A stretch of DNA of 64,000 bases. Origin: Amphiscolops sp. MND2022. Its lineage: Eukaryota. Below are positions 2,973-61,177 of this stretch, piece after piece. The translations under genes and the position numbers were made by a program. The stretch lies in assembly GCA_964187785.1 (NCBI GenBank), contig OZ076412.1, forward strand, positions 42,656,001 through 42,720,000, given 5' to 3'. The notes under the pieces are model-generated. The model was not told the origin of the DNA. It ran no database searches and saw nothing but the letters and a program-made list of their open reading frames with translations. Positions within the stretch are counted from its first letter, which is position 1. Each line of letters begins with the position of its first letter.

Positions 2973-3041
2973 CTCCTTTGGGTCGCACAATTTTCTTGCC
3001 AGTGATTGGGTCGATGATGGTTTCCATTTCACATGCAAGCT
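2973..3041 (-). CDS. DPxTG-repeat exon (69 nt): (E)LACEMETIIDPITGKKIVRPKG
   Basis: ttttag acceptor, G/gttggt donor, phase 1-1. Confidence 0.8.
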
Positions 3042-6000
3042 CTAAAACAACAAAATGTCATACTTGAAAAATATGTCGAAATTAACTTCTTAATGATGAA
3101 AATATGAATAGAATAAAAACTATTTTAGGTTCATAGTAACGGCATGCAGTAAAGAGAAACAATGTTCCGGTTATGAGGTTGGAAAAAAGGGTCTGAAAGA
3201 TTCGAAAAAACGCTCATTTGCTACAGTAATGAGACATGACAGAGAACTGACCTTTAAGTGTGCCCGATTTAGTTCTGATGAACATCTTTCCAGTGACCGG
3301 GTCAATTGTCACTTCCATGTCTTCGTCCAGTTCTGGTCGGAAACAACAGGAAGACTTAGAATTATTGTCATTCATGAACTAGAATCAAATAAATTGGCTA
3401 AAATCACTTCATGAACTTGAATGAGTTTATTTGGCTGAGCTTACCATTTGATTATAATATCAGCAACGTGCGAGATTCTGTTGCAACAATTCTGAACACT
3501 CTTTTTCCTTCTTTCACAAAATTTAAAATTTTCTTTGGGCGGAATTTGACCTTTTTCTGACAAATATCTACAGAAACTGAATGAGCATCTTGGTAAACGC
3601 TTTTTAAGAATCCAGAAAACTACGGTAGTCTTAAAGCATGAATGTGTTTTAAAAGTCAAAATTGAGCTCCTAACCAATGAACCTGCCGGAGATCGTTTTA
3701 ACATATGTCTTTCCAGTCCTTGGGTCTGTGAACATTGTGACGTCATCGCCCATTTCTAAATTAAACATACGGTGAGTAAACTATTTTTTAAAGAAAACAC
3801 TTATCAGTTACAGTGAAGTATTTCAACAAGGGAAACAGACAGGAGATTGTAGCAAGAAATAAATGAAACCACGGATCGGTTGGATTGACTTCGAAATGAT
3901 GAGAAACACCACTTTTGCTAGAATCAAGGCGTTCGTTCACAAGATAAGAACGTTAAAAACCACTGATCAAAATTCCAAATGTAGAATTTAGAAAATGAGT
4001 TTTCCGAAAGCAACAGGATCTTTGGTATGATTGAATCTCTCATTAAAAAATCCATCAGGAAATGAGAAAAGATGTATATTGAAAGCGATGGTTGCCATGA
4101 GTATGAGAGAATATGATCTGTCAAAAACAAACTGCAGTTTAGTCCCGACAAGTGAAACTAAATCATGTATATAAGTGATCACAGGCGGTGAAGAAGTGGG
4201 AATGTTCTCAGTTTTAATTCAAATAGTGGAGGCTGCTTTGCAATCCTACAAAATGTTTCCAAGCAGGCTCCAGGAATTTTCCAGGTTTTTTTAAAAAAAA
4301 TTAGCCTGCATTTTTCCATGCAGCATGTAAAAGCACAAGTGGTGTAACAGCAGAAAATTTGCGGAATTGTTCATGAATTCTCTCCGTTCAAATGAAATTA
4401 AAAACACCACAATTGTGTTGAAAGGACTAAACAAAAATTTTAAATCGACATGGGGTTAACTGCTCAATTCTTTCATGAGCCAATCATAGTTCAATTGTTT
4501 TTTACAAGGCCATTCAGTTTCTTTGTTTGTTCAAACTTTTGTCAATTCTCACGAAAAAAAGATGAATTTTACTTCTTCACGCTTTTCTAGCAAACCGAAA
4601 ACAAATTTTGATTGAACAACTGTATTGAGAAACATTTTGGCGACGCGACAACCCCCGAACAGAGCCCAATGGCAGAATTACTGCAAAGAATAAGAGGTGG
4701 TCATATCAGCATAGTTACATGTCAAGAAAACAACACGAAGCAGATTTTCGAGAGACATCCATCGTCAGTCGCCAGTTTAGAGTTATCAAAACTCAAATTC
4801 AGTCTCAAAAGATGCATGGAACAATATGAAAAAATCAACACAATCAATCATGAAATTCTTCAAGGGCTTGAAACAGCTGAAGTAACAGATGATGCAATTC
4901 AAAGGGAGCATGACAAAGTCAACACAATTGGTTTCAAGGTTGGCAGTTTCATTCAAGTGCTTGAAGATTTCATCGAGAAAGCTGAAACGGCGCAGCTGAC
5001 ACTGATGATGCAGACGATTGAAGGAACTCAGTTTCCAGGAATGTTTCACTTAAGTTGCCAAAGTATTTTCAACCGATTTTTTCTGGCTAATACAGTGAAT
5101 GAACGCCATTTTTCGATCTGTTTCAAAACACTGTCAACTGCAATAGATCCCTGAATGACATTCAGAAGCTACAGTATCAAAGACATGTCCCCAGGATCAA
5201 CCCGTGAGACTTCTCTCACATCTCCCCACAACAAGTGCAAATTATGATGTGGCTTTGAGAATGCTCGAAAGAAAGGTATGACACCAAACGTATGATTATT
5301 CGATCACACCTTGACTCCATCGTCAAAATTCAGCCCCATGCAGCAAGAATAGGCCGATCAACTCCGTTAATAAATAGCTGTATTTATGGAGAACTCATTG
5401 GCTCTCACAGCCTTGGGAGAAGTTACAGACAATGCAGACTGCAATTGGGTCTACTTGCTAGCAGAAAAGCTAGATTCTGATACTAGACGCCAATGGGAGC
5501 TGCACAGCCCTAGCGACAAGCGACAAACGGCAGAGGATTTGCTGAAATTACTAGATGAGGGAGGACGACATTTGGATTTCTCTATGTCAAATAGCACACA
5601 CATCGCAAAAGCAAGAGATACAGCAAAGTTTAAAAACAAGGGTAACTTGCAACTCTACCACAGCCAAGCAAGTACGATTTGTCCCAAATGCAGCGAGCAC
5701 CATGGAATATCAGCTGTAGCGACTTCAACTCGTTATCTACTGAAGATAGGGTTCAATTCGTCAAAAGCAGCAAGCTGTGCTTCAATTGCTTGAGAACCGG
5801 TCACAGTAGTAAGGATTGCAAGTGAAAATCAGGATGTCGTTTATGCAAAAAACAACACAACACGCTCCTCCATCGTCCCCTGCCTCTAAAGAAGGAAGCA
5901 GTGACACCTCAGTCCTCTTTGGGTCATGGGGGATACACTTCATTTTCAGCCATTCTACTACCCACAGCTGTCGTCCGAGTGAAGTCTCTCAAGGACAAAG

Positions 6001-9000
6001 TAGTGTCGGTGCGTGCTTTATTAGACACTGGCTCACAGGTAACCTGTCTTACTGCCAAATGCAGGGATCGTTTGGGACTACAATCAAAGCAAGCTGATAT
6101 CTGTGTCACAGGAATCGGAGGTATTATCTCAGTGAATTCAGAATCAATTGTGGGACTACAAATTTTTTCACACAGGCAAGGGAGATTGCAACCACGGCAG
6201 CGGTACTCAATCAAGTTACAAAAGCATTACCAAGATATCAAGTCCATTACAAGAGTCTTGATGCTGTTGAGGATCTCAATTGGGTAGATCCAGATTTCAA
6301 AACACCAGGTGAAACCGACGTCATTTTTGGTGGTTATTTTTATGAGCGAATCGTTGAAGAAAAACGAGCAATATATAACCAAGAACTTTACGTCTTCTAG
6401 TGAAAATGACAACTAAAAGATTTCACTGTTAGCTACAATCTAATGTCATCTTCATCGTCCGTCAAGACCCAAATGCAGAAGAAAAATTGAGAAAGATTGT
6501 AGATCCAAAAACGTTTTTTAAGAGTTATTTCAAACAATGGCATTGAGCAGTATTCAATTCAGCCAACGCTCTATCAATCAATGTCATCATTACTCTTATT
6601 TGGCGAATTTCGTTTTAATTTTTCAAATTTGAAAACAGGACATTACAGCGCCAGCGTGGGACAGCATTGCGTACTGGTTAGAGCCTTCGGCCTGTTCTGG
6701 GGCGGTATCAGGTTCAAAGCTCTCTCAACTCACCATTGTTTGGTCAAAGATAAAAAATTGGTCAAAAAATTTGGTCAAAGATAAAAGACATTTGGTGGAG
6801 AAAAGCAACGGTGAGCAGTCAGACCTGTGTGACCTTGAGGAAGTCAGTTTGAAGCCACACTTTCAAGCCCACCATTGCTTGACCACTTTGCTTCAAATAC
6901 GGCACCATAGCTTGGTATGGGGAGATAGAGGTAATGGGGTGTACGTGTTTTCAAGATGCCAACCCAATCATGCAAATGTTGGGTAATTGTACGTCTTTTT
7001 TCAACAAAGATGCACAATCAGCAGCGAGGAATTTTCCGTTCCATTTATTTTCAGCTACGATATTTTCGAAGGCTCGAGCGGAGAAAATATTCTACGAACT
7101 TGCTAAACATTTCAGTGAAAATTGAATTTTTGAGACTTTTCTGTCCTTCTAATTTCATTTTCAAAAAAAATAGCCCTGAAGAACAAGAGTGTACTATGTT
7201 GTACTGTGGAAATTCAAACCCTCAAAAGCATCCACAATGTGAACAAACTTCACAAAAAACTTTCGAAAAGTAAAAAACATGACTTTTCTTGGCTGTTTTT
7301 TTTCCTTTTTTAGCAAACAAATCTCCGTATGTCTCCGTTTGAGCATGCTAGGTTATTTGAAAAACATACCTACTAAAACATCCAGAAATGTACTCAAATT
7401 ACCAACACGATCAAGAAAACAAAACTTTACATTTTCTGTTATTTTTGTCTCCCTTCATTTGAGAAAAAACTTTTTTTTTCTGTACAGCTGAGAACTAAGT
7501 AGCAGAATATTCTCTGGTTGAACTCTCTGGTTACTCATAACCTCAAAAACATCCAAAAACATTTGCAAGAAACAATTTCTATGTGAGGAGAAAGAAGGAG
7601 AAGGTTCTTTTCCATATTTTCCTGTGATTGGGATGCGAACAAAAGGCGTTGTTTCTCACGACCATTCAAGCTTGTTGTAACTCTCTTCTATAACTAGGAA
7701 TAGCATGTACAATTCAAACTTTATTCTATCTTGTTCTGAGACTTTATGATAGTTCATCATCTACATACAATAGGCAGGTACTTGATAAAAAGAACAACAG
7801 TATGTAATCATATAAATACAGACTAATTAGCATGTATGTAAAGAGTCTGAGTCTTCTACTACATTCCCCCTTCACTATTGGCTGTCGACTGGCCAATGGG
7901 GTTTTGTGTAGCTTCTGTATGGCGGTGATTCCTCCAATGGTCCATATGTTTGTGGACGGATAACCGATCCTCGCATTGGCTTTTGTCACAGTGTTCTTTT
8001 ATCCGTGACGTCTGTTTGTTGTCTGCTGTTGGGTTTAGTTCTGGTTGCTTGTTTCCATATCTGTTTGGGTTTGGCCCGGTGTTTCTTCCGAGTTCAGCCT
8101 TTCTACGGTGGTTCCTGTAATCATGACATATTGGGTTATTATATCTGATAATTGGGTTAGTTTTTGGTAGTCTTTTCGATCTGCGTACTTTTTTTTTCTT
8201 CGCGTTTAACATCTGTTTCTAGTTCAGTACTTGAGCTCAGGTTAATGGCAAAATCTATATCAAGGCTATTCTCTTCCCCCTCGTTAGGGAATATGTTATT
8301 ATTATTAAACGCCTTACCGTTTTCGTCTCTAATAAAAAGTTCTTCGTTGGCTTGTTTCGCGTCGTTGATGGCACGGTTGATTTCCGTGTCCGTCATGTTG
8401 GTAGTTATGGTGAGCGGGCCGATGTCTTTGTTTGTGCCCCCCGGTGTGCTGTGTGGTGAGCTTGACTCCGACCGTTCTCGTTTCTGTACTGGTTTGCCTC
8501 GGCCGAATGTACCCTTTTTGACCGTAGTGTTGTCTGTTTGGTCCGGTGTTGGCTCTGACTCGTTGTCTGACTCCAGTATATATGTCCTTCTTGTTTTGGG
8601 TGGTGACTTCGTGAACCGGCCATCTGGTCCTCTCGGCCCGGTTCCTCTGTTGTTGTTGCAATCCTGGTTAAAATTATTAAGTGGTTTACTAATACATTTT
8701 TTATGTACTATTCTTCCGTTCGGTGTTGTCACCGTGTGTTTTGTTCCGGACACGGCTATGTTCGGTTTATCCATGTAGGCACTTTCGAATTTTGATTTTT
8801 GATGTTTTTTTTCTAAGAAAAGGAATGGGTAGTTACTAACTCCTTTATCGTTTTTTTCGGCTTCATTGGTAGCTGGTCGGACACACCGCCGGCTCCACTG
8901 AATGAGTATACCTGTAGGGTATCTGGTTTTGCTGAAATGGAATTTTCCGTTAGTTTCTTCAGACTATCTAAGTTTAGTAGGTTACTAACTTCCGTGTTTG

Positions 9001-12000
9001 GGCTTCGACCGTAGTGTAATTCGAAAGCTGATTTTTTCAGTCTCGTGTGTGGTGTTTTACGCATTCTTTCTAGAGCTATATCTAGGGCTTTTCCAAAACG
9101 TTCTCCGGCTTTTAGGTTTGTTAAGAGATTTTCTTTGAGTGTTCTGACTCCTCTCTCTACGAGGCCTGTCGGGGTATGAATATACGGTGTGCCGTATATT
9201 AGTTTGATGTAATGTTTTTTACAAAAATCGCGGAAGAGACTTCCTGTGAAAGCGGTTGCTTTATCCGTTCTGATCGTTTTCGGTATTCCATTTAGTTGGA
9301 TATACTGTTCGATAAATTTTACCGCCGTTTCTCCGTCCGTATTTTTGCAAAAACTGGCTGCCGGCCATTTACTAAATCGGTCTATGGATAGTAATATATA
9401 AAACCGGCGGTTATTTTCTGTAATCGGGCCAATGAAATCCAGTTGAATTTCCTCGTTCGGATTGCTTACCGGTGGTAGATTGTTTTTCTCCGTATACGGT
9501 ATGTTAGGTTTAATGCTCTTACCGGACATTTTGCATGGTATGCAGGAGTCGCACTTTTTCTGAATGGCTTCGGTTATCCGTGGCCACCAGAAGTGTCGGG
9601 CTGCTAGGGTCATCTTGTTGATGGCCGGGTGTCCTTTGTGTAGCAGGCTTATAACCGTGGTGCGTAGATTCTTTGGGACTACGATTTTGTCTTCCATGAA
9701 TACGAGGCCGAATCTGCTTGACAATTTCTTTTTGACTGGTAGATATTCTTCGGGTATCAGCTCATGTTGTTGTCTTTCCAGACATACTAGTGTTTTCAGT
9801 AGGCTGGCGTCGTTCGTCGTCTCTGTCATAAGCAGCTGTAGATCGGTAGAAAATTTTTTCTCCGTTTCTCGCACTGCTTGTTCCAAATCCCAGTTGTTTT
9901 GTTCTTCGGCGGTTATTTTTGGAGCGTGTCCCATCTTCACGTATTGGACGCTCTTTACTCCGACATATTGTGCCCAGTTTATTGCCGGTACTTCTAAGAT
10001 TGATGGGTCTTGATCGGTGTCGGTTTCTATTTCGCCTTCCTCCATTGGTGTTGTCTGGATGTAAGTTTGTTGGGATGGTCCGGGTCTGTCGTGTTGGACT
10101 GGGGTGGGACGGTCCAAGTCCCAGTATGGATCAACCGTCCATTTTTCGCTGTGTCTGGTGGGTGGTACAAAGCCTCCCGTCTGTTTGGGGCTAATTCTTT
10201 GTCTAAGATCTGCCGTTCCGTGGTTTTTCATAATTTGTTGCAGTCTTTCTTCTATCACCTTTCTTTCATTGCGTAAGAATTTTGGTTCGTGATAGCGCTT
10301 CCATTTTCCCCCGGTTAATCGATAAATCCCGGGTTTAACGATTTCTCGCCAGCGCTTTGTCAATTCAATTGTTTCCGCGGTTGGATTTGCTGCTTCAATC
10401 TCGTTTATTGTATTTGCATCCTTTGTCAATTTGATGCTTTGGCAGTGCTTTTGTTTGAAGCGTGTTAACGTATCAGTGTTAAGGCAATCAATGGCAGTTC
10501 GTCTATGTGTGTCGCTGGTCCGTGGTTTGTTGTTTGCTTTGCGTTCACTTTTCTCCGTTCTGTTTTCTGATTGGTCAGTTTGGTTGCTAAGGCAACCATA
10601 CTTGGAGATAAAGTTGTAGTGCGGTAATATGTTGTTGATTACGTATTCTTCATCGTATGCGTCATCTGTTTGCGGTGGTAGTATCGGATTTCTACTGAGA
10701 TAATCCGTAAGTGCTAAATGTTTACCGGCTATATGGTGTACGTTAATATTGAAATGTGCTAATCGGTCCAGCCATCGTGTTAAGCGTGCGCTGTATGTTT
10801 TATTGGACCGGTTCCGTTTGATTAATGGTTCTAGTGCCTGGTGATCGGTTAAAAGTTTGATCGGTTTTCCGTAAATGTATAAGCGGAAATGTTCTAAACC
10901 CCATACTACCGCCAATAATTCAAGTTCATTTATTGCGTATTTCTTTTCGGTGTCTGAAAGGAAACGACTGGCGAAACCGATCGGTTTTAGTTTCCCGTCC
11001 GGTTGTTCTTGCCATAGGGTAGCTCCCAAGCCTTTTGTGCTTGCGTCCGTTGTTATCACATTTGGGTAATCTGAGTTGTAGTGACCCAAACACGGTATCT
11101 CCGTGATTTTTTGTTTTAAGTTTTCAAATGCTTGTGTGTGTTCTTCCGTCCATATCCATTCGTTCTTTTTTTTCAATAACTGTCTCATGCTGTTGGTTTG
11201 GGCGGAGAGGTTGTCGATATATTTTGACAAGTATTGAATGGCTCCCAGGAATGATTTTAGTTCTTTTTCATTTTTTGGTTGTTTTAGTTCTTTTATGGCT
11301 AGCAACTTGTCTTGGAGTGGTCGGATACCGGCCTGGTCAATTTTGTGGCCTATCCATTCAATTTCCTTTTTGAAAAATTCGGACTTGTTTTCACTTAAGC
11401 GGTATCCTGCTTTTTCTAGTCTGGTTAGGACGTCAATCAATTCTTTTTTGTGTTCTTCTTTTGACCCTTTGGTTACGACGATGATGTCGTCTAACCAAGC
11501 TGGATGTTTGTTATCCAGTGTTTGGTCAATCTTTTCCTGAAAGACCGTTGGTATATCCGCTAGACCGTAAAAGCCCTTTAGGAAGCGGTAGTAACCGGTA
11601 AAATTTCCCCCGGTTACGGCAAATATACACAAGTTTCTAGCTTCTCTTGATAGCAGTAGTTGTCCGTATGCGTAATCTAAATCGAATTTTGAGATCCATA
11701 TCTCATCTGCTGGGCCATCTGCTATTTTTCTTGATATCCGTGAAATCAATTCCTCCATGTTAGGCATTTGTGCCTTTCTTTTCACGGTTATTTCGTTCAA
11801 TTTTCGCGAATCTAGGGCAATTTTTATTGACTTGTCTTTCTTTACCGTGATCACGGCTGGACTTACGAAGCAGTTTTCGTCGATATTGTTGGCTTTTTCG
11901 ATATGTCCTTGTTTTATTAGTTTTTCTATTTCCTTCCCCACCGATTGTTGGAGGTGAATCGGTATTGGTCTTCCTTTCTGTTGTATCAGTTTCGCGTCTT

Positions 12001-15000
12001 CTTTTAGTTTTATCTTTACTTCCAGTCCATTTACTGTATGGTTTTCGGTGAAAAGTTTCTTGAATTTCGTTTTCAATGATGTTATGTCTGGGTCTTCTTT
12101 TATTTGTTGTATTTGTGGGACGGTTTTGTCCGTCTCCAGCGTTATTCCCAGCTTTTTCATCCAGTCTAGCCCCAGTAATGGGTTGGTTCTTTTAGTGGTC
12201 ACTAATATTTCGAGTTCTTTTTGTTTTCCGTCAATTTCCACTTTGGCTATCGTTTTTCCTTCGAATTGTATCCGGTTGTTATTTACATCCCTGTACTCCG
12301 TTTTTAGTGGGTGTAATTTTGTGATGTTGTTAAATAGTGATTTTGGTATTATTGTTACCGGTGATCCGCTGTCAATGATAAATTTGATTGGTCGGTTATT
12401 GACCAGTGCGGTGATTGTGAAGAAGTCCGGTCCGTTGCTGTTTATTGATCGTGTTGAATGGATCTTTTGTTTCACTGAATGGATTGTGTTCGGTGTCCAA
12501 TCGTCTTCATTCGCGCTACTTGTCTCTTCCTCCAATATATGGTTCACTCTTTTATTTGTGCGGCAACATTTGGCGAAGTGGCCTATTTTTCCGCATTTTG
12601 CACACTTCTTTCCTCGGGCTGGGCATTCGTGTTGTCTTGACCAGTTTGGTGCTCCGCAACGGTTGCAATCGACTTTTTTGAATTTTGTCGGTTTTTCCGG
12701 CTCTTTTGTTGGTTTTATTTTACGTTTATTCAAGTAGCGTATTTTCTTCTCTTCTTCTGTTTCGGGTGAGTCGTTTAATTTGTCGTAAGTGTATTCTAGT
12801 ATCGCGTCAGTTATTGCTTCTACCGACATGTCGCTCTTTCTGATTTTTTTCTTTAGGTCGTAGTCTCCGGTTGATTTTCCGATGACTGACAAAAATTTTG
12901 ATGCTAGAAGTTCTGCCGCGGTTATTGTTTCAAATTCGCAGTTTTTTTCAATTTCTAGTATTCGTTTCCACACGTCTGCTGCGGATTCACCGTCTTCTCG
13001 TTTTAGATCGAAGAAATCGGCTCTACTATGTTGTACGTTCCTTTCCGGTGTGAAGTGTAGTCGGAAAAGTGTGTAAAGTTTATACAATGGTAGTGAGCTC
13101 GGTTCTCTTTCTCTGATTGTTTTTGTCATTTCCGTGATAGCATTTTGTCCAATTGCCCAGATGAAAATGTCTTTAATTTCCGTTTCGAGTTGGTCACGGT
13201 ATTGTGTCAGTATCTCTTTGTTATTTGTCATGGTTGATAGGTCTATTTCTTTCGTCATTTTTATGTATTGGACGAATTTTCTCCACCACAAGTTTGCACT
13301 GGTGTGATCGTATTTCTCCAATGTTGGAATGGTCAATTTCTGAGTGCAGGTCCGGTCAGCCGTCCTGTTCATTGTATCGTTCGGCAGTGTTTGGTTGTTT
13401 TGCCGTGTACCCGATGAAGACAGTGTGTTGTTTCCATCTCTTGGGTTTTCTTCCGTGTTTTCATCCATATCTTCTTTCTGGATGTTTTGTTTTTGTGTTA
13501 TTCAGCTTTTTGTTCTAAGCTGACTGCGCCATGTTGTAACTCTCTTCTATAACTAGGAATAGCATGTACAATTCAAACTTTATTCTATCTTGTTCTGAGA
13601 CTTTATGATAGTTCATCATCTGCATACAATAGGCAGGTACTTGATAAAAAGAACAACAGTATGTAATCATATAAATACAGACTAATTAGCATGTATGTAA
13701 AGAGTCTGAGTCTTCTACTACAAAGCTAGAGAAGAATACCGTGTTCAAAACTCAAGAGGGCTGAGTATTCAGACATTGATTCTGCAACAACGTCGGTCGA
13801 ATGACCTAGTCACTACATCATGACTTCAACATGAGAGCTTACTTTTTGAACACTTCTTGATTCAATTTATTGATCTTTTGACTGGAAACTTCATTTTTCT
13901 CCGAATAAAAGCTGGCAAAGTTGCATAAATATTTCTGTTTTTCAGTTTTCTAGATCTTCATGCCCACAGACACTGTCAAAAAGAGTGTAGAAGTTGCATG
14001 AAAAGTCGATTGTTTTGTATTTAAACTCTGTGATTTGTTATACACACGGAAACAGGACAAAATGTGCAAATTAAGGTTCAAAATGGAAAAATCTGACCCT
14101 TTTAGTTCATTTCAAGTGTATCTTTGGAAAAAAACCGACTTTTCACTCGAAAAGTATGCAAAGTAATCAAAATTTAGATTGTTGAACTCTGTGGATATCC
14201 ATAGCTTCAAAAACTTTTTTCATTGCAAAAGCAAAAAAAGTCGAAAATCGGAAACTTTGGTGTTTTTAGCCCTTTTTCAGCTGTTTTGTTGATTTCGAAA
14301 AACGTTTCTCTCTTTAAAAATTATGCTGAAAAATAATTGTTTGAACTTCCCATTCTTTGAATTATCATACCCACAATAAAAATCAAAAATTTCCAAAAAG
14401 TTAATTTGGGCTAAATTGGAGAAAAGGTAGTTTTTGTATTGGCATGTAGAGGATTTTTTGGAACGAAGGCGTCCTGGTTGGCAAATTTATTCATCGTTAA
14501 AGTTTGTGGATGTTCAAACTTTTCAAAACCTTGAAAAACTGTACAATTTAGTCAATTTTCATCAACATATCCATGACTGGATCGTTTTTAATCAATGTTT
14601 TTTCGAAGTTTCGCAATTAGAATTTCAGATACTGATGTGTTCAAACATGAAATTATGTGAGCTTGTAATGAAATTTTGATAGTGTTTCGACAACTAAAGA
14701 CAGGGGTGTTCAATATTTGATTCGATTATTATTGCCTAAAAATAAATTATTTTATTTTCAGTGTAGAGAAATAAATAATTTCATTATTTTTTTGCTAAAA
14801 TAAATATTTTTATTCTCAGCGAAAAACATATATCAACAAAAAGCTAAATTAGCCATCCATAATCAGGTCAAAACACGAGGACAGGACTTTTTTAATGGAC
14901 TCTTTGACCTTTTGAGTCAGTAGCCCAGGGTACTTGACAAAGGCATTTCTAAAAATTAGCTCAAGATTTCTGTATTTTCGAATTTAATTGGCTGACGATA

Positions 15001-30000: not shown

Positions 30001-33000
30001 AAATTACGAAGAAGAATTTGTTATTAACGCCATCGGGCAACTAGCAACGGTAAACGCCCGAATAGGACGGATTTTCGACCAATCAGAAGACGCGACCACG
30101 GCAGCCGAAGCAAACATGCGTGATACGCGCTCGCTAATTGACACGCGACGCTACCAAACAAACAAAAGCCATATTGATTTTAATTACCGTATACAACAGC
30201 ATTCATCCAATACTGACTGTATAAAAATGAATAACAATGAAAACAATACACGCTTCTTCCGCACAGACGGACAATTACGACACCATTGGGGTGCAGATGA
30301 TGATATCATGGCTATTATCAATGCAAGAGACAAATCACCCGAAACTACGGAACTCGTGAAAAGAAGAGTACAATTGGCGAGACCGGGTGTAATGAGACCA
30401 CATTTCAACAAGAACTTGGGCCGAGAAATTTACATACCGAGAAGACCGGAAGAAGATGAAAGAAGAGAAATAAAGCGAATTGACATTCAACTGAGACAAA
30501 AGATCAGAGAGCAACATATCGGCGGAGGATATTTTCAAAACTTTGGGAACGACATTCCCCAGAGACAAAACACCGAACAACAACAAACCGAGAGAAATGA
30601 ACCGGCCCCAGGAAATGAAACCAATCGAGATACAGAATCCACCGTCTCAAACAACTCGGAGGAGCAGTAGCCACCCACGAACCCGGAACTTACCCAGCAA
30701 TACCAGTCCAAGAATACAGAGACGGGCCAATCGAAGAAATTGCCGTACACTACGTGAGAATTAACCGTGTAGTTGAAGAAAAACCGAAGCGCAACAGACA
30801 ACAAGAAGATAACGTCAGATCGGCAGAACTAGATTTCATGCTAGACTTGGAAACGATAATCAAAGAGACGGCCGCTGACCCTGATCTCATCGAATTAAAC
30901 TGCTGCATCGAGGACAACAAATTGGACCAAATTCCGCAGAACTACAAAACTGTAGCCAAGAAATTGACATACCGTTGGGGCATTATATTGGTTGATGACC
31001 GCATCGTAATTCCAAAATCATTACGCTACGCAGCACTCAATGCACTACATTTTGGACACCCCGGGATAAACAAAATGTACAACGACGCAGCAATATTCTG
31101 GTGGCCGAACATGCGGGAAGATATTGAAAAGAAATCAAAAACCTGCTCAGCCTGCCTCAACGCTGGTAAGAATCTAAAATTCCAAATACCTCAAACCGAA
31201 AAATCAAAAATTGAACCGCCAAAAACACCTGGCGAAGAAATACAAATTGATTTTACGGGAAATCTCAACAATAAAAAATTGCAAAGCAATCTGTTTATAC
31301 TAATTGCGGTGGATAAAAATAGCCGATGGCCAGTAGCAAAAATATGTAAAAATACGAACCATGAAACCGTAATTTCATTTCTGGATGAATACATAAATGT
31401 ACACGGAGTACCGAAACAAATAAAGTCGGACAAAGGCGGCGCCTTCATCTCCAAAGAATACATAGAATACTGCAAGACGCATAATATCAACCGCATATAC
31501 GGTACGGCAAACCTACATACTGGCACCGGATTGGTCGAGCGCACAATCCAATCGTTGAAGAACTTAACTCTGGCAAATTTAGAAGACAACCAAAATCTTC
31601 GTGAAAGCGTAAATAGAGCACTATCGTCCTAAGATTTACAATACACTCAGAAACAAAGAAAACTCCGTTTGAATTGCATTTCGGACGGACACCAAGAACC
31701 AAACTGTCTAACTTAAAAAATTCTATTTCAGTGGATTCCAAAGATTTCTCGGTGTACATCACCAGAAATTCAACCGGACAAATCACGGATCATCTGGTAA
31801 TGTCAAAGAAAAAGATAGCCGAACCAAGATACAAACGAGGGATGACATTCTCCCAAACAAAAAAACCGACCAGTGCGGTAAGTAAATTTGAATATCCTTT
31901 CAAATTTTACGAAAAAAAACCACAAAAAAGGATCCATGGAAAGTAAATTCAAAAATAAAGTACAAACCGCTGTATCTGGAACAAGACACACCGTGACAAC
32001 GGATAAAATTAAAATTATCCACAGGAAATTAATATCCAACCTACCGTTTCAGCAAACAACAACACAGGCAAAGAAGATCAACACCCGCCAAAACACCGCA
32101 GACCAACCCACCTGCTCCCAAACACTGGACAATACAACCACCAGCGGAGCACCCTGCATCTACAGCAGGAAAGAAACACCGAAGAACACCGCAAACTACG
32201 AAAGAAGCGAGGACTGGTCGAAAAGAAAGGAAATACCCAGAAACAACAAGGGACAATTTACTTCACCAAACAAAAACACAGAAAACTTGAACCTGAGCAT
32301 CATATCTGACGACGACGACGACTTCGAATGTTACAACAAAGCGGAAGGAAAACCGATACAAGTCAACATCGAAGATGAACTTCAGCTCCACCCGAAGGAA
32401 ACTAACCTGACACCGGAACAAGGTAGCTATAAAAGGAAAAATAGAACAGAAAAACCGATAGACCCGGTCAGAAGATCTAATAGACTACCTTTTGCAAAAC
32501 AAACCGAAAAATTAGGCGGGATACTGTACCACTTTAGTAACAATAAGAAAAAATTAACTAACCACGGTAATCTATTACAGGAAACAACAGCGGAAACAGC
32601 GGAGAGAAATGAGACGGAGAACGACCGTCCAATGCGGCAAAACAATGAAAAAATCTGTACCATACGGCCACTACAACAAACCCCCATTGGACAACTCCGA
32701 AGAGGGGGGAATGTGATATCATGCAGATATCATGACCTTCAAAACTATGAACCTACACAGAGAGCATACTATTGTTGTTAAACATAAAACTCTAATTACT
32801 GTCAATTTGAGTTTACTACATTTTGTGTTGTACAATAGAGTATTGACCATTGTACTTGAGATTGATACTATAGATTAGTTGCTAAAGAAGATACGAATTT
32901 ATCGTCTTAGATAAAGAGCATTGTTACCGTAATAGACCGCGATTACAACAGTCATACATTTCCTCAATATGAGGAGTACTAACCGTCGGCTGTGCGAACA

Positions 33001-36000
33001 TAGGTGATTCCCGTTTCGGGGTCTACAAACACTTCCATGCCTGGATTTCGTCTTTCTCCCAGATACATTTTGCCAGTGATTGGGTCCACGTACATTTCCA
33101 AGTGATCGCCCAATTCTGAAATACGTGAATCATATGTTTATCAATGAAACAAACGCTGTGAAAAGATTGAAGATTTCTGTTCAAATATGTATTATAAGTT
33201 CCGAAAATTTAAAAATTTTTTTACCGTGTTCTAGTACCGTGTTTTCTGCAGATGTTTTACACCCAGTTGTAATCTAGACATTTGCCGGAAGGCAAAGCAC
33301 AATGAGCATTCAGAGCGCCCAGACTATTGTCAGTTTCAAGGGAAAGTTTACAATTTTTTTGTGTGAATAAAAATTCCTAGTTAAAACTCGGGAACTTTTT
33401 GGTTATACCGCAACGAGTAAGATACTAACCCATACATAACCAGCAAGTCTGCATCACATGGTCAAAATAGGAAAAACGCCACCAAAGTTTTTCAAATCAG
33501 TTTTTTGATATAAACTCCCTGCAAATTCACGTCGTACCAATGATTCATGTACACTTTAGGCCTTTAGGGGATACAAAAACGAACCATATTCTGATATAAA
33601 TAACCACAATTCAAATGGCCACATTGAAAACTACAATGCGGTCAGGAATATCTGTCAAAAATTTTGAAAGTGACCGATTTTATGAACACTTCATTCTCAT
33701 TGACAAGCCTCGAATTTTTCGATGAAGCCGTCATGTTTAACCCAAACTGCCTTTGTTGACTAACATTGTTAAAAGACTCCCGTTGCAAGCTGCGGCAGAT
33801 AAATTTTCATCACGTGTCTAGATTGGCCGATTTAGTAAAAGCGACTGAAAGGGGGAAAATAGTCTGATGTGCTACTGGTCATTTGATAAACTTGATTACT
33901 TGTAGACGATACTTCTCACGACTTCAAAAGGTTGCGGATTGATGTCAGCGATATAGTTATTAGAATCGATCCAATAAGGTTGGAACCGCGTTGGGACACC
34001 TAGGCCCCGGACTATTAGCAGTGAAACTAGGACAACCACTCAACTGGCACATCTGCAACGCTTCAATTAAGTCATACTAGTTATGAAACCGATAGCCCAT
34101 GAAATATTGAGACAGTTGCGAACGTTTTCGGAACCCTGATGCAAGCGTAGGGTAAGGACTGGCCCAATGTAAACTAAACCCGAATATAATGTATATCTTC
34201 ACCAGTCAACCTACGATCATTAAATTTTCTCAAGATACACACCTACCACTTTTGAGTGAAATACATGCAAGTAACATTCATAGGTGCAGCGCGCGAGGAG
34301 TATTGTTCCTCGAAGATACGCGCGTGCCTAGTCCAAGACACACGTTCAACTTTGACTTATAATATATTGAATGGATCACAATAAGAAAAGTAGTCAGTCG
34401 CAACCGAGCGAGGGACTATATCAATACCCTATCCGTGGGGTAACCGCGTTAAGTAAACAAACCATCTTGGAATCATGTAACTCGGAATCGAATAACCCTA
34501 TGTTCATCTAGCACGACATAGATGACCATTATATGACACGGGAACGCATCAAGGCTATATGTGGACCTGAAGGTCTTTCCAGTGTGGCCACACCTGAACA
34601 TATTCAAAAACATGCATTTAAACATGTGAATGAGCCTCTCTTTCGTTCTACTCTATGCATTTTAATGCAATAGAAGCGACGGTGTGCCTCGTTCATACTG
34701 ACGGGAGAAGTTTCCTCACATGTAATTCATTTAACTGGAGGTCATTGAAAGATTGTACCTCCTTCAGAAAATTCTTTGAAAGACGAACTTCAGAGAAGTT
34801 GTTGAAAAATTTGTAATTGGAGGTAAAGAATGTCTAGTCGAATTATCACTATGTTGGCAGCGGCCAGCCATGGCGTAAAAAAGTAAACATATGCAAACTT
34901 GAGATGCCAACACCCAACACCTAGTAATGTAAAAGTCTAGTATGACAGAATGTGAGAATGAGATCACAAGAAACACGTGAAATGAACAGATATACCTTGC
35001 GAGGAAACGAAGTAATTGAAAAGAAACAAGAAAAGAGCTCGGAGCTTGTTTAGTGTCGCAAGGTTACATGAGTACTGTGCTGTCGCTAGCTCTGCAAGTT
35101 CGAGGGTCGGCAGTGCATTTACTGACAGATCCAGGACAGACTACTAGGTTTGTTGAAGTTGGAGCTTCAGCGAGATTGAATGCTGACCAACGTAACTGTC
35201 TGAATCGCGGTTTTTGTGTAATTGTGTCTTTTTATTGAGAACTATTTAATGCATTGAGTGAAATTATTCGGTTGGATTTTTTATTTATTCTCTATGTACT
35301 AAAATGAAATGATATATAATGATTTTTCAGTTGATAAACGGAGCCGATAGGGCAAAAACAGAAAAGAATTTAACAGTAATTTGTAAAAAAAAGTTGAAAA
35401 CTTTTGTTTGCCCATTAGGACATCCTTTTTTGGATTAATAGTCCGGTTAGAGGTAAAGTCTCTTGACCCCCCAAATTGTCATTTTCTTGTAGGTGTCAAA
35501 ACTTCATAGCAATTACTCGGAACTCTCAATTTACGAATTATTAGGTGAAGCAAAAAACTGAAGCAAAAAATTTCAGTCCTTGAAAGTAATATTTGTGAAC
35601 ATGGTGGTGGAACTTTTCAATTTCCTGTCACTCATTTGTATCGAAGGTATCGTTACGTAGTCACGTCTGCAACTAAAGGTGGTTTGAACCTTCCGAAAAC
35701 GTTGAAACATCTTAAGTCGTTTGGTTTTCACTTTTGATAAATGAAAGTTATTTCTCTTCCATGAAAATCTGAACAAATGTTGACAAATGTTCATAGATTG
35801 GAAACTCAAACTTCAATTGATGCGTTCCGTTTTTAGTCGGCGCTTTTCTTAAGAAAAGAGCCCGACTATTACAGTCACTCGTTTTTTTTCTTTTTTTTAT
35901 TTAAGACAGACTCGAAGCGACGTACGTTAAAATTAACGTTCAACTACTAAATACAGTACTAAACTACTGGACCGCTAAAGGCAAACGGGGAGCGCATTTA

Positions 36001-39000
36001 TTTACTTTTTAAACGTTACCTACAAGCCCGGACGGGACTAAAATTCCCCCCCTTTCAATTTTTTTCGGCACTGTGAGACTTTTTTTTCGAATTTTTTTTA
36101 ATGTCCCCAAAGGGTCCCCCTTTGAGTTTTTTGTTATTTTGCTACAGAATGCGTGTTTATAAATCAAAAAGGGTCCCCCTTTTATATTTTTCGGCACTGT
36201 GCGACATTTTCCGAAAGAATTTTTTTTCAGAAATTTCAAGTTTTTTTCCAAAAAAAATATTTTGCGCTTTTTGAGCCTTAGATATAGCGCCGACTTGAGA
36301 CGTTCCCGTCTTGTTTAGTCGTTGCTTCTCGTAGAAAACGCATACTATAGCACTGTCTTTTTCAAAGACCAGCGACGTGACAAATTTTTTAAGCTTTATA
36401 AGCTGAGCTGTTGCTTCCACTAACTGCCACACTAAACTTGTAACTTCTACTGCCATTTGGCATAGAGGTTAATTAGGAATTTTTTGAGGTCTGCCAAGCA
36501 GAAAGAAGTGGGTTCGAGTCTCGCCCTTGACCATTTTTTGTGCATGTTATTTCGGCTTTGTGAAACCTTTTTTCGCAAATTTTTTATTAATGTCTCCAAA
36601 GGGCCCCCTTCATTTTTTATGTATTTTGCAACAGAATGGATGTTCAAAAAATTCCAAAGGGTCCCTTTCACTTTTTTCGGCACTATGCGACTTACCGGAG
36701 ACTTCAAAAACATTCCGGAAAATTTTTTTGATTCAGGTACTGTAGAAGAATGCTTTGAAGTCTTTTTGCTATTTATGAGCCTTAGATATAGCGCCGACTT
36801 GGGCCGTTCCCGGGTTGTTTTGTTTCATCTAGTTTACTATATACTAGGTTGTTCGAAAAATTAACCGCCGTGGTCTGTGTATAATTTTGATACACACTCG
36901 TCATATGATTGCTTCCAACAATTGTGGGTAATATGAACAAAATGTTACCTTTCAAGGTTCCAGACTTGGTTCTAAGATACGTTTTACCATCTTCACCAAT
37001 AACCACTTCCATGATTTCGCCGTCTTTGGTCTTCACGTACATTTTGCCAGTTAAGGGGTCTGTGAAAATCTGTAGACCAGGGTCTGAAACAAATAGTTCA
37101 ATACTACATTTGGAAGCTTTAAACTTTGTCAGAGTTTTGTATGAAAGATGAGACGACATACAATTTTGAAACCACCAAACATGACTAACCTTTGTTTTGC
37201 TTCAAAAATACTTTTCCTGTGACTGGATCTGTTACAAGTTCCATGTCTGCCGGAAGCTCTGAAAAGTTAGAATTAAAAAGTGATTTAGTTCTTTCTTTGT
37301 AAACTGTCGTTCTGAATGACTAAAAGCATTGAAGTATTTACCTCTGAGTTTCCCGGATTTGGTTTTCAAGAAAACTTTGCCAGTGACGGGATCAGTGTAG
37401 ATTTCAAGAATTTCACCTGAAAAAAAACAGTGACAAATCGTCCTATCGAGAGGGTATCTTGAGAAAATGCTATGAAAAACATTGCAAAAGTTTTAATTTA
37501 AAAAAACATACTTTTGCGAGTGCCGATTTTTTTTATTTTAGTGACAGTTAAAACCCATCCAAATATCAATTCAAGTTATTTTTTCGAAACATTTCACAAC
37601 TTTTTCGATCTGATTTGGAATACAGAAAATATTTCATCAGAAAATACAGACAAGCGTTGCAAATAAGAAACGTAAGCACAATAGGCTGAGGTCTGAATAG
37701 AATTAAAATGCTCTATTATATACCAAGATTGGAAACTCTTAGAAGTAGAAGTAGAAGTAGAAATAGAAATCGAAAAAGAAATAAGAATAGAAACTGCGAT
37801 AGTTACCATCTTTTGTGCGGATGAACTGTTTGCCAGTGACTGGGTCAGTGAACACTTCGAACGACTCTCCCCCTCCCCCGGTTCCGGCTGCCCCCGTTTT
37901 GCCAATGAACATTTTCCCAGTAACCGGGTCCGTGAAAATCTGCATATCGTCCGGCAATGCTGCACACAAACATAATAGATAAACGTTACCGCCTTTTTCT
38001 TCCTTCTAATTCTTAGAAAACATTAAAAAATTTTATTCAGACTCAAAAATTAAAGTTCCACAACATAGACTTCCAAACATGTGGAAATTTTTAACGGTAC
38101 AATCTAGTATCAATTTATGGCTACAATCTGGTTTCGTGTTATCGCTTCAGTTTGGTATCATCTAGAGTATTGAACATGACGACAACTAGATACTTGATAC
38201 CAAATTTGGAAGTGAGATTTCATGAAGATTTCATTTCTCTCCAATTCTGATGTTTGCGAAAGAAATACCTCTCAGTTTTCCAGACTTTGTCTTGAGGTAT
38301 GTTTTTCCGTCCTCTCCCACCACAATCTCCAGCAGTTCTCCGTCTTCAGTTCGGATGTATTGTTTTCCGGTGATAGGATCCGTGAAAATCTCATATTGCG
38401 CTTCGTCTGGAAAGAAAAACAATTTGATCTTCTGGACTTGTTCCGATAAGCAATCAAACTTTTTAAAAAAATTTTTTAAATTTATTTTACACTGCACGAA
38501 TGTTTCCAAATGTTTTTTTTATAACTTGAAGTAATCATTTCAACAATAGTAGACTGTTGCTAAGATTGCTCACTAAGGTAATAGTTTTCACAAGCTACTT
38601 AAGTTTTAGCCAAGAGACAACAAGACAACCTGTGATGCTCCGAAGTTTCCGATTCTTCATAATTTTTGTCAGTCTGGCATTTTTTGCGGGAAAATGGTCA
38701 AATAACAGGTGTCAGGAAATTACGCCCAAAGTGGACCTTACGCACAATGAATACGGGGACGATTAATAACTTCCGAAAATTAAGAAGGAGGAAGGCCGAG
38801 TCATGCAACTTTTCTTCAAATTATTGGACGTAATGTCCGCTTTGGATGTAATGTCCTAGAACCCAAATAACTGTTTTGACCAAAAAGATATTGCTATTCA
38901 CCTGGCACCATGGTAAGAATTTCACTCTTCACTGACCTTTTGGTTTTGTGCCGATGTACATCTTGCCTGTTGTGGGATCTACATACAATTCCATGCCAGG

Positions 39001-42000
39001 GGGAAGTTCCTTTAAATTTCCACTGGCTGTGCGCATGTACACTTTTCCTGTTTTAGGGTCAGTGATGATCTCCATAATCTTACCGTCCTTGGTTTTAATG
39101 AACATCTTGCCAGTTATTGGATCCGTGAAAACTTCCATCCCAGGGTCTGCAACATTACAAAAAGTCTTATAATTTAAAAACTTAAATTCAAAAAACACTT
39201 GCAACAATGAAGTAAGATTTTTAAAAAATGAATTCATCCGATCTTTGTTGCCCAGCAAGAGAATATGGCATATAGAGACATCATATCAGCTGTATGATTT
39301 CATGGAGCGTTTTAAGTGTAATAAGCAAATTGAAAAGCTCACTAATGGGTTTTCATCAAAATGCAAAATTACCAAGTTAGCTTGGTAAAACTATACGAGC
39401 AAAAACTAAGGAAGATTATCAATTTGTTCAGTTCTGATAAACTTATTTGCAGTTTCGTCACTCTTACAACACTTACTACTGGAAATTTCCAGTGCGCTCA
39501 CCTTTCTTCTCTCCCAGGTACATTTTACCAGTGATGGGATCTGTGTAGAGATCTAGAGATCCAGGCACCTCGATCAGCTTTCCTGACTTTGTGCGGAACA
39601 TGAGTTTTCCTGTTTTGGGGTCCTTGAACACTTCAATTCTTTCTCCGCTCTCAGTGATGACGTACATTTTGCCATCTTTGTCCACAAAAACTTCCAACTT
39701 GGGGATTTCTTTCCTCTTCCGTCGCTGCTTCAGCTCCCCTGTTTCCGGGTCTATGTAATACTCCATCTCCCCGTCTAAAAGTTTGCTTTTGATATTCCAT
39801 TTCAAAGAGTACTGAACCGCATAGACTACTAACAGGTTGACTCATTATAGTTATTATATTACCTTCATGCCATTTGAAATGCTGAATAATGCCTACTTCA
39901 CAAAAAACAATCAACGGACTGTACGCAAAAATTGGTCATTTTGTTGTTTTAGTTGAAAAGATTATAAGATTGCTTCACAGAACTCAAATTTCATTTCGGC
40001 CATTCTCCATATGGAATGAAATTCAACTTCTCTGTCTCGTCCCCAAACTTTGCCATTTTTTTCCAATTTCATACTTATATGATTATAGAAGTTCTTCCAG
40101 AGATATTAACGACAAAAAATTTTGTTCACGGCATACCTATTTCTGGAGATACAAATACTCTTCTTTAATAAATACTTACAATAAAGATAACCTGAAATTT
40201 CGTAGTCTAAAGCTACGTTCTAAAAAGTTTATCGAGCTTTAGCTAGCCGTAAGAATCGTAAGTAAATCATGACTATCGTTGATTGTGCAACAGTGGCTAT
40301 AAATGCTTATTGCTAATTTTGATTTTCAGAAAAACGTTTCGAAAAATTACTTTGAATTGGTAATAGAATATCATCCATTATTATAGGGTTTTGTAGAAAT
40401 TAGTTTTACGCTGGAACATTTTGTTATTTTCCGCCCATATTTCATATGGGAAAGGAAAATATTTAAATCAAACGGGTTTTTTTTTTTTTTTTTACAAAAT
40501 TTGCCAAGATTTTATTTATATTTAAATTTAAGGGTGTTACCCATAGAATTCAACCCACATAAATTTAGCTTCGTGCGATATGTATTTGTAGAGATTTTTG
40601 AAGTTTTTTTAAAAAATGACGAAAATGACCCCTTAATGACAAAATGACCCCTTAATGACAAAATGACCCCGAAAATGACAAAAATTCCCAAATTTCTCAT
40701 TTTTAAACATTTTTATGCAATTTTTGCCATTTTTTGAGACACCGCGAATTAGAAAAATGGACAAGATGAATCGAAGCTTTCTTTTCTTCGAACTTCTCAG
40801 CGTTTTTATAGTGCATTAGTTATTCTTGAGCCTCAAATTTATGTAGTTGTAGAACAGTTCGGGGCGGAAAATATCCCGCTCCTCAGCGGGCGTCTTGTTG
40901 AAGTTTAGAACATTATTGAAGGTACGGTGCTAGAACAGTATCGGTGTCTATTAGTAGATGCTTGTAATTTTAAAGTTACGACAAAATTTATGACGGAATT
41001 TCCACGCAGAATGGCCCGCAAAGATTTTAATCCGCCAAAACATTCAATTTTGACAGTTTTTTACACTTTTCTTCAATAAGAATGTTCTTGATGATTTAAA
41101 CATCCACGGAGTTCAATGACAAAATAATTAGTTCCTTGGCGTTGTTTTTGGGCCAAAGTGGGTCAAAATTTCCATATTTTTTAGCCATGTTCGTTGTTTA
41201 TTAGCTACACTCGAGCCTTAAAAATTAGTTGTGTTTAAAATTATTTGGGAGCGGAAAACATCCTAATCCGTCTCATTACCTAATCTGATGCATATTTTAC
41301 TGATGCAATTTTCAATTTGGTTCAAAGATCCTGCTGTCCAATTGGATATACTGTCATTTCTTTTCACATTGTAACACAAATTTGTCAGTTTAATTTTGAA
41401 CCAATTTTATGAAAAAGTACTTCAACTATTTAATGATTTCAATTAGGTGTCCTACCATCTCCCATGAGGTCGGCGAGTTTTGTTCCCCATAGCCGTGCAG
41501 CCACTTTTGCATCCATGCCCAGATCTGCGCCCCCAAACAACTGGGAGAGGACTGCGGCTGCCACTAGAGTCGCCCTTCTGTAAAGACCCTTCTTTCCTAA
41601 ACGAGAGTCGCTCCGATGAGAGTCACCGCTTGATCACTGTGCATATCGAAGCATGTAAAAACATACTAGTGAATGCATACATGAATGCAGAACTACATGA
41701 CAGAATGAGACTACGTTTCTAATGGAAGAAGTTTCTAATTTGTTATTAGCCGCGCTACACTGTGTGTTTGTGAAGAAAAATTATAGACGAGGGCGAAAAA
41801 TGAGACATTTTCTGCTAAAACTAGAAAAGAAAATGTGTCCTGAAAATCAGCCATGAACCCCTCCCCATATATTGTAAACAATTTTAAATAAACACCATGA
41901 CGATGAACTGACGAAGTTTCAACAGTTTTCTGACTGTTGGGGTGCAAAGCACTTGCATTGATTCGATTTCAATCTCAGAAAAACTGTTGAAACGTGAACT

Positions 42001-60954: not shown

Positions 60955-61177
60955 CTGAATGCAGAAGACCACAATCAGCACACATTGATATCAGTTTCAA
61001 AATAATGTTTTCTATCGCACTGCCAAGTTTGCGCGTAGTTGATTAAAAAGTGGAACTTCATGGCACAAGGCTCAGGTGAAGATGATTTCGTTAGTCGAGA
61101 TCAAATGACAAACTCTGAAAAAAATTGTTGAAAAATTCGAGAACACACAGTATTTTAATTTCGTCAATTTTAGACCT

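Follow-up and report, generated by a model that had tools for sequence, protein, structure and literature searches.

When is a long run of short, frame-compatible repeat exons a sign of combinatorial splicing, and when is it simply the form taken by an old repeat gene? The question is raised by an exon array in the genome of Amphiscolops sp. MND2022. The window, that is the whole stretch of 64,000 nucleotides (nt) analysed here, extends from position 42,656,001 to 42,720,000 of contig OZ076412.1 (C4) in the 1.07-Gb assembly GCA_964187785.1, and it consists of AT-rich animal DNA with a GC content of 34–43% in 2-kb windows. A sequence-only reading had recognised sixteen consecutive exons of symmetric phase and had proposed that they could be joined in many combinations to yield isoforms differing in the number and type of repeats. 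Exon-phase symmetry is an established signature of modular evolution (PMC3632108).

We consider it probable that the array belongs to a gene that encodes a chain of beta-bead repeats, is constitutively spliced in the one RNA sample, and is old and held under purifying selection. The array would make up the middle of a single minus-strand animal gene that is expressed and exceeds 90 kb. Features are numbered in window coordinates and are listed in Table 1; in splice-site motifs a slash marks the exon border.

The Exon Array and Its Transcript

All sixteen exons, with the lengths, phase and G/GT ends first assigned to them, were recovered when AG and GT sites and codon offsets were listed around the open frames, and RNA fixes eight of their borders to the base. 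On the minus strand, each is preceded by a pyrimidine-rich AG acceptor and followed by a GT donor, begins at codon position 2 and ends in a G at codon position 1 (phase 1-1). Joined together, they yield the 2118 nt and 706 amino acids (aa) reported earlier, spread over 37 kb in four clusters, with no stop codon, and with every exon symmetric and the joined frame open, any exon can indeed be joined to any other in frame. Scanned in six frames for DPx[TS]G, the window gave 29 matches, none of them outside 2973-39774 or on the plus strand, and a profile hidden Markov model of the repeat unit found 29 copies in the 16 exons and nothing comparable in other frames or strands of the 64 kb. The exon array is far beyond chance.

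Although all sixteen exons are real, the count itself was too low, and the run of consecutive phase 1-1 exons with lengths that are multiples of three also takes in E0 upstream and a further exon downstream of the window.

Transcript evidence derives from run X5 (129 million letters of contigs), the only RNA-type data set, which was made from a sample other than that used for the assembly and was recognised as RNA from its behaviour over 36900-42890, not from the labels of the run search. One 6105-nt contig (depth 75, minus strand) consists of exons only, carrying 41598-41456 followed by E1 to E7 and the start of E8. Its record positions run without a gap from 3484 to 4679; the joints read CT..AC on the genome, equivalent to GT..AG on the minus strand. 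This contig gives zero depth over the introns, which the DNA runs X1, X2 and X6 do cover, and in 200-nt bins over the array the X5 depth equals 75 times the number of exon bases, such that one contig accounts for all of it. This one contig shows E0 to E7, and the entry into E8, transcribed together and joined at the predicted splice sites. Since this contig spans the upstream exon and E1–E8 without skipping, the gene is expressed and, in the X5 sample, its first eight array exons are all included and spliced constitutively. What had been described as a modular repeat array within one co-transcribed gene is borne out by this contig, and an unannotated 37-kb stretch becomes a verified expressed gene model.

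Table 1. Exons, intronic elements and paralogous loci of the array gene, in window coordinates unless a contig is named.
Feature	Position	Strand	Length and content	Evidence
E-1	43977-43912	-	encodes ..IENMKNLFSSLLAQNLLKKLR	3' end 43912 fixed by RNA; 5' end putative
Candidate optional exon	42837-42187	-	651 nt, phase 1-1, acceptor ttttttgttaccag, donor AAG/gtagga	predicted from sequence
E0	41596-41456	-	141 nt, phase 1-1, non-repeat	RNA contig 3484-3626, contiguous with E1
E1	39774-39502	-	273 nt, 4 units	RNA contig 3627-3899
E2	39146-38937	-	210 nt, one complete A-B-C super-repeat	RNA contig 3900-4109
E3	38406-38269	-	138 nt, units A-B	RNA contig 4110-4247
E4	37959-37807	-	153 nt, units C + A	RNA joints 37959/38269, 37416/37807
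E5	37416-37342	-	75 nt, unit B	RNA joints
E6	37258-37190	-	69 nt, unit C	RNA joints 37258/37342, 37083/37190
E7	37083-36949	-	135 nt, units A-B	RNA contig 4545-4679, loose end leading to E8
E8	33115-32984	-	132 nt, units C + A	RNA loose end at 36949 matches 33086-33115
Broken Gypsy-type element	27295-32781	+	separate reverse transcriptase/RNase H and integrase frames	
E9	17373-17227	-	147 nt	open frame and splice sites, C5 paralogue conservation
E10	17076-16912	-	165 nt	open frame and splice sites, paralogue comparison
E11	16583-16437	-	147 nt	open frame and splice sites, paralogue comparison
E12	16074-15913	-	162 nt	open frame and splice sites, paralogue comparison
E13	15763-15683	-	81 nt, one unit	open frame and splice sites, paralogue comparison
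Gypsy-type retroelement	8157-13468 (polyprotein 8813-13468)	-	intact 1551-aa protease, reverse transcriptase, RNase H, integrase; host-gene orientation	
E14	3755-3675	-	81 nt, one unit	open frame and splice sites
E15	3332-3252	-	81 nt, one unit	open frame and splice sites
E16	3041-2973	-	69 nt, one unit	open frame and splice sites
Exon downstream of E16	-16297..-16365 (19 kb below window)	-	69 nt, phase 1-1, encodes VGLGFELYVDPETGKAYLRPRD	
C5 paralogue	C5 33.32-33.34 Mb			unit search of assembly
C7 paralogue	C7 36.237-36.263 Mb			unit search of assembly
C4b paralogue	C4 86.54-86.56 Mb			unit search of assembly

The Repeat Unit and the Predicted Protein

The repeat unit is about 24–27 aa long and follows the pattern EvFTDPxTGKxYxRTKSGxL. 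An alignment of 33 segments revealed that the units are organised in an A-B-C super-repeat of three, about 70 aa in length and ending in a linker rich in Pro, Gly and Lys. When E2, which comprises one A-B-C, was modelled by AlphaFold2 with that alignment, seven beta strands were predicted at a predicted local distance difference test score (pLDDT) of 85. The C7 paralogue product P0119 (577 aa) was modelled at a pLDDT of 56 overall, with a helical N-terminal region of about 100 aa, hairpin blocks scoring 70–80 and dips exactly at the C-to-A linkers. The protein would thus carry a short helical N-terminal domain and then at least 30 beta-hairpin units in super-repeats of about 70 aa, each predicted to fold as a small seven-stranded beta-meander bead on Pro/Gly-rich linkers. 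The paralogues close with a C-terminal coiled coil, which bears a conserved F/I-x-YSY motif. Such models suggest an elongated spacer or linker of the beads-on-a-string kind, probably intracellular, which may dimerise through the coiled coil.

Searches of protein families and structures yielded few leads. Neither the single exons nor the open reading frames (ORFs) of the paralogues or upstream of the array could be assigned to a Pfam family as established members at curated thresholds. The window exons all fall under the cut-offs, the best being DUF6440 at 25.3 bits against 26.5, while the 601-aa paralogue ORF passes mainly by adding up weak matches, at 51.6 for DUF6440, where no single stretch would pass, and at 32.2 for DUF4585, where two do. 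DUF6440, DUF4585, PepSY and the bacterial choline- or cell-wall-binding repeats all show hairpin units of about 20–27 aa with a turn of the D-P-x-T-G-x-x-Y type and give weak profile or fold matches, and the likeness to the first three appears to be a resemblance of repeat motifs. Superposition on the choline-binding proteins CbpF, LytA, LytB and LytC gave Foldseek E values of 0.48–0.83 and a template-modelling score of about 0.3, and these proteins were absent from the top VIA rows.

A profile search of 1.84 billion representative proteins returned only fragments from this and close genomes together with bacterial matches, which are at motif level only. A word-index search of 5.8 billion proteins matched P0119 and its 85% identical relative P0001 and no others. 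None of the fold searches against PDB, AFDB clusters, VIA wide and Atlas was significant (Foldseek E at least 0.2 against PDB, best VIA Z 3.9, AFDB and Atlas weak), and an ESM Atlas feature search with E1 and the paralogue C-terminus gave no usable match. The unit appears to be an undescribed, lineage-restricted repeat; the 1.8 billion representative proteins contain no relative of the family that has been named.

Paralogues, Age and Selection

The unit also occurs at three other loci of the assembly, and each matches the window array collinearly, with exons and units in the same order. Amino acid identity to the C5 counterparts is 84% for E7, 88% for E8 and 92% for E9. Within the window gene the best exon-exon identity is 68–70% (E3 with E7 and E5 with E9), and this suggests that [E3-E6] and [E7-E9] stem from an old block duplication. 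Between paralogues the proportion of synonymous differences (pS) is 0.78–0.86, which is saturated, and that of nonsynonymous differences (pN) is 0.15–0.21, and therefore the array is old and under purifying selection. It would predate the four-fold gene duplication. Growth by exon duplication, as had been suggested for the array, can be retained as an ancient process at best, but the introns share no similarity and exon identity within the gene reaches no higher than the values above. Repeats at the DNA level within the clusters are confined to exons, at 60–75% identity, and comparison of introns with one another within the clusters found no similarity.

The loci differ in their introns. The C7 paralogue encodes the N-terminal domain and the first 17 units in a single 601-aa open frame with no introns, and the C5 paralogue has extra introns, also at unit borders, with its homologues of E1 and E2 split further. 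Intron density among the paralogues runs from zero over the first 17 units up to roughly one intron for every one to three units. In a related animal, small exons of the C5 type, matching E4b to E10, are retained on 2.2 kb of a metagenome scaffold.

Some details of these relatives may be recorded here. The first exon of the C7 gene (G000:C7:36237164-36238829, L010) is intron-free, and its 85%-identical relative (L011:9576-11329) has a break following RKRKQFPR and carries as one exon two later ones that are separate in this genome. Intron presence appears to turn over quickly in this repeat family. The C5 paralogue (G000:C5:33321203, L019) and its orthologue (L025:1660-1893) have one unit without the DPxTG turn (CDIWANALQNKFFLRT), and this unit, with the turn lost, is conserved between both species.

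Intron Positions and the Uniform Phase

Introns enter the unit at only two positions, both in phase 1, one at the K-[SD]/G turn, for example RTKD/GEILEI and GEKK/DPGMEV, and the other after SGxLx/E, for example SGTLK/ELGDHL. The uniform phase would stem from the common descent of the units, with introns at two homologous positions that split the codon after its first base, and the family may serve as a natural example of uniform intron phase acquired by descent in a repeat gene. It had also been remarked that every junction codon begins with G; this is correct, and such a codon can therefore never be a stop, but the G is simply the last exon base in the MAG/GT donor consensus.

A different origin can be envisaged, in which introns were gained repeatedly at AAG/R proto-splice sites in a once intron-poor gene resembling that on C7, so that the common phase would mirror a repeated target and not shuffling. 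It would fit with introns that are unrelated in sequence, with unit borders of the form ..AAAG/AA.. that suit proto-splice sites, and with the differences in intron presence among paralogues and close species already described for C7 and its orthologue. Nevertheless, the exon borders of E3 and E6-E10 are common to the window gene, its C5 paralogue and the orthologue of the latter in another species, despite the saturation of synonymous sites. Old introns with differential loss would be the simpler reading of these shared borders, and we hold repeated gain to be highly improbable.

Constitutive or Combinatorial Splicing

The symmetric exons could still act as cassettes if different tissues or stages were to skip different ones, producing isoforms that vary in repeat number as for tropoelastin and the PEVK region of titin, and several observations are compatible with this. 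Every exon join is frame-neutral, and there are precedents in tropoelastin, with all splice sites in phase 1:1 and much alternative splicing, and in the skipped PEVK exons of titin. Several donors deviate from GTRAGT (gtattt, gtctgt, gttggt), a single-copy candidate exon of symmetric phase lies between E-1 and E0 outside the RNA contig, and an extra RNA piece ends at 41365-41300. Set against these is the one unbroken contig that crosses eight successive junctions. The sequence-only reading had proposed RNA as the place to look for skip junctions, and over 36900-42890 X5 holds neither a second contig nor a skip-junction contig on any array exon, a result which rules out abundant skip isoforms for E0 to E8 in one sample, given that contigs lose rare variants.

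The paralogues and the protein lead in the same direction. Every exon is kept one-to-one in the paralogues under purifying selection, and the C7 paralogue and its orthologue hold the same units in one exon, implying that function needs no splicing choice. The super-repeat coincides with E2 only, the other exons consisting of A-B, C+A, B, C or B+C, and because exon borders cut across super-repeats, frame compatibility is not fold compatibility. With two classes of intron, only some skips keep a unit whole, namely those flanked by introns of the same class, which are available to E2, E9, E13, E14 and E15 or to pairs such as E3+E4. Conserved or complementary elements were not found in the introns, where inverted repeats are only of A/T-rich low complexity. 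Combinatorial splicing into many isoforms is thus unsupported, and we regard the cassette reading as unlikely, preferring a constitutively spliced array. Were it nonetheless true, the locus would constitute a tractable counterpart, built of folded modules, to the length tuning of PEVK and elastin.

A narrower proposal also deserves mention, in which a clade-restricted chain of beta beads is constitutive in X5 and tuned in length in other tissues or stages, by skipping E2, E9, E13-E15 or exon pairs and by including an optional disordered exon of 651 nt (42837-42187). We judge it quite unlikely; if true, the array would be a folded-domain analogue, in an invertebrate, of the titin PEVK and tropoelastin systems.

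Some points weigh against the reading of a single long gene with constitutive splicing. The RNA comes from one sample in the form of contigs, from which rare isoforms are dropped, and covers E0 to E8 directly, and the splicing of E9-E16 is suggested by sequence and conservation in the paralogues. The 3483 nt of the contig that precede E0 could not be located on the genome, and exons for the C-terminal coiled coil of the window gene were not found within 50 kb downstream or genome-wide. Moreover, the proposed function leans on low-confidence modelling and on the termini of the paralogues.

Relation to Known Symmetric Exon Arrays

In tropoelastin, exon borders are all in phase 1:1, such that removal of a cassette keeps the frame, and alternative splicing is extensive (bioRxiv 10.1101/2024.12.03.626628). 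Its exons resemble those of the window array in being short, repetitive, multiples of three and in phase 1:1. There is, however, no relation in sequence or composition, since tropoelastin alternates hydrophobic and cross-linking domains whereas the window array encodes beta-hairpin units, and the alternative splicing documented for tropoelastin contrasts with the absence of any in the X5 contigs.

The titin PEVK region consists of symmetric repeat exons derived from old block duplications, with transposable elements in the introns (PMC6469411; PMC3575840). It is similar to the window array in its many short, symmetric repeat exons set in series within a giant gene for a structural protein. It differs in being disordered, rich in Pro, Glu, Val and Lys and subject to skipping regulated by RBM20, whereas the window array is fully included in the contig and its unit, predicted to be all-beta with the pLDDT given above, is neither of the disordered PEVK type nor a hydrophobic or cross-linking one.

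Dscam also has tandem homologous exons of similar size in one gene. There, however, they are mutually exclusive and depend on docking and selector elements in introns, whereas seven adjacent exons of the window array occur together in one contig, no such elements were found in the introns, and the exons code for units that follow one another in the protein and do not compete for one position. The locus belongs with symmetric exon arrays in the style of tropoelastin and titin PEVK, is homologous to neither and carries an undescribed repeat; a new splicing mechanism is not demonstrated by it.

Extent of the Gene and Neighbouring Features

Upstream of the array, E0 encodes a helical N-terminal domain GKKGLYRRATLVAAAVLSQLFGGADLGMDAKVAARLWGTKLADLMGD; its RNA border at 41598 carries a 2-nt AG ambiguity, and the true start is put at 41596. 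The contig's loose end at 41598 aligns from 43914 onward and so defines E-1, an exon with the donor GAG/gtgaga and with homology to the N-terminal end of the C7 paralogue. With an acceptor tttcag at 43978-9 it would be a 66-nt exon of phase 1-1, and an alternative acceptor at 43999 would make it 88 nt. In the other direction, the next recognisable exon after E16 is that at -16297..-16365.

Further upstream, low-complexity open frames rich in E, K, P and A occur on the strand of the gene at 48564-48881, 52137-52490 and 60785-61042 and at L013:2083-2751 and 3607-3936. The E/K/P-rich frames of the minus strand lie between 48 kb and 74 kb, with one or more of them single copy. The 5' 3.4 kb of the transcript may come from these candidates, which would add a long disordered region at the N-terminus.

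The intron between E-1 and E0 holds a single-copy frame of 247 codons, rich in K, E, S, T and Q (239-aa ORF, 42131-42847), in which the candidate exon 42837-42187 lies. The candidate exon is absent from the X5 contig, RNA depth is zero over 42100-42890, and it has no Pfam match. As a 5' exon the ORF was dropped for its zero RNA depth and single copy, and it was kept as a candidate optional exon; besides that, the frame may represent a nested gene or an alternative terminal exon.

A separate X5 piece at 41300-41365 (minus strand, depth about 81) ends at a donor-like GTAAAA site (41300/41299). Beyond 41365 its sequence was not found in some 124 kb of C4 around the locus (window -50 kb to +10 kb), and it has no canonical acceptor there. 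It may derive from a chimeric contig, or else mark an alternative 5' exon.

The division of the array into four clusters is due to its large introns, which hold insertions of Gypsy-type retroelements, one of them intact and another broken. In the intron between E0 and E1, the region 40420-40900 is a very high-copy short repeat, with a word depth of about 2-4 x 10^5 in three DNA runs against about 50-90 in its flanks and with many rearranged joints.

On the minus strand, 45934-46266 and L013:6779-7399 (window +71.4 kb) are two related open frames separated by about 25 kb. They are without a Pfam match and read MPSTRxQKAK..., ...FNLRLSQEMDSMM...MHSQ.NRAI...; they appear to be part of an unknown repeated gene or element.

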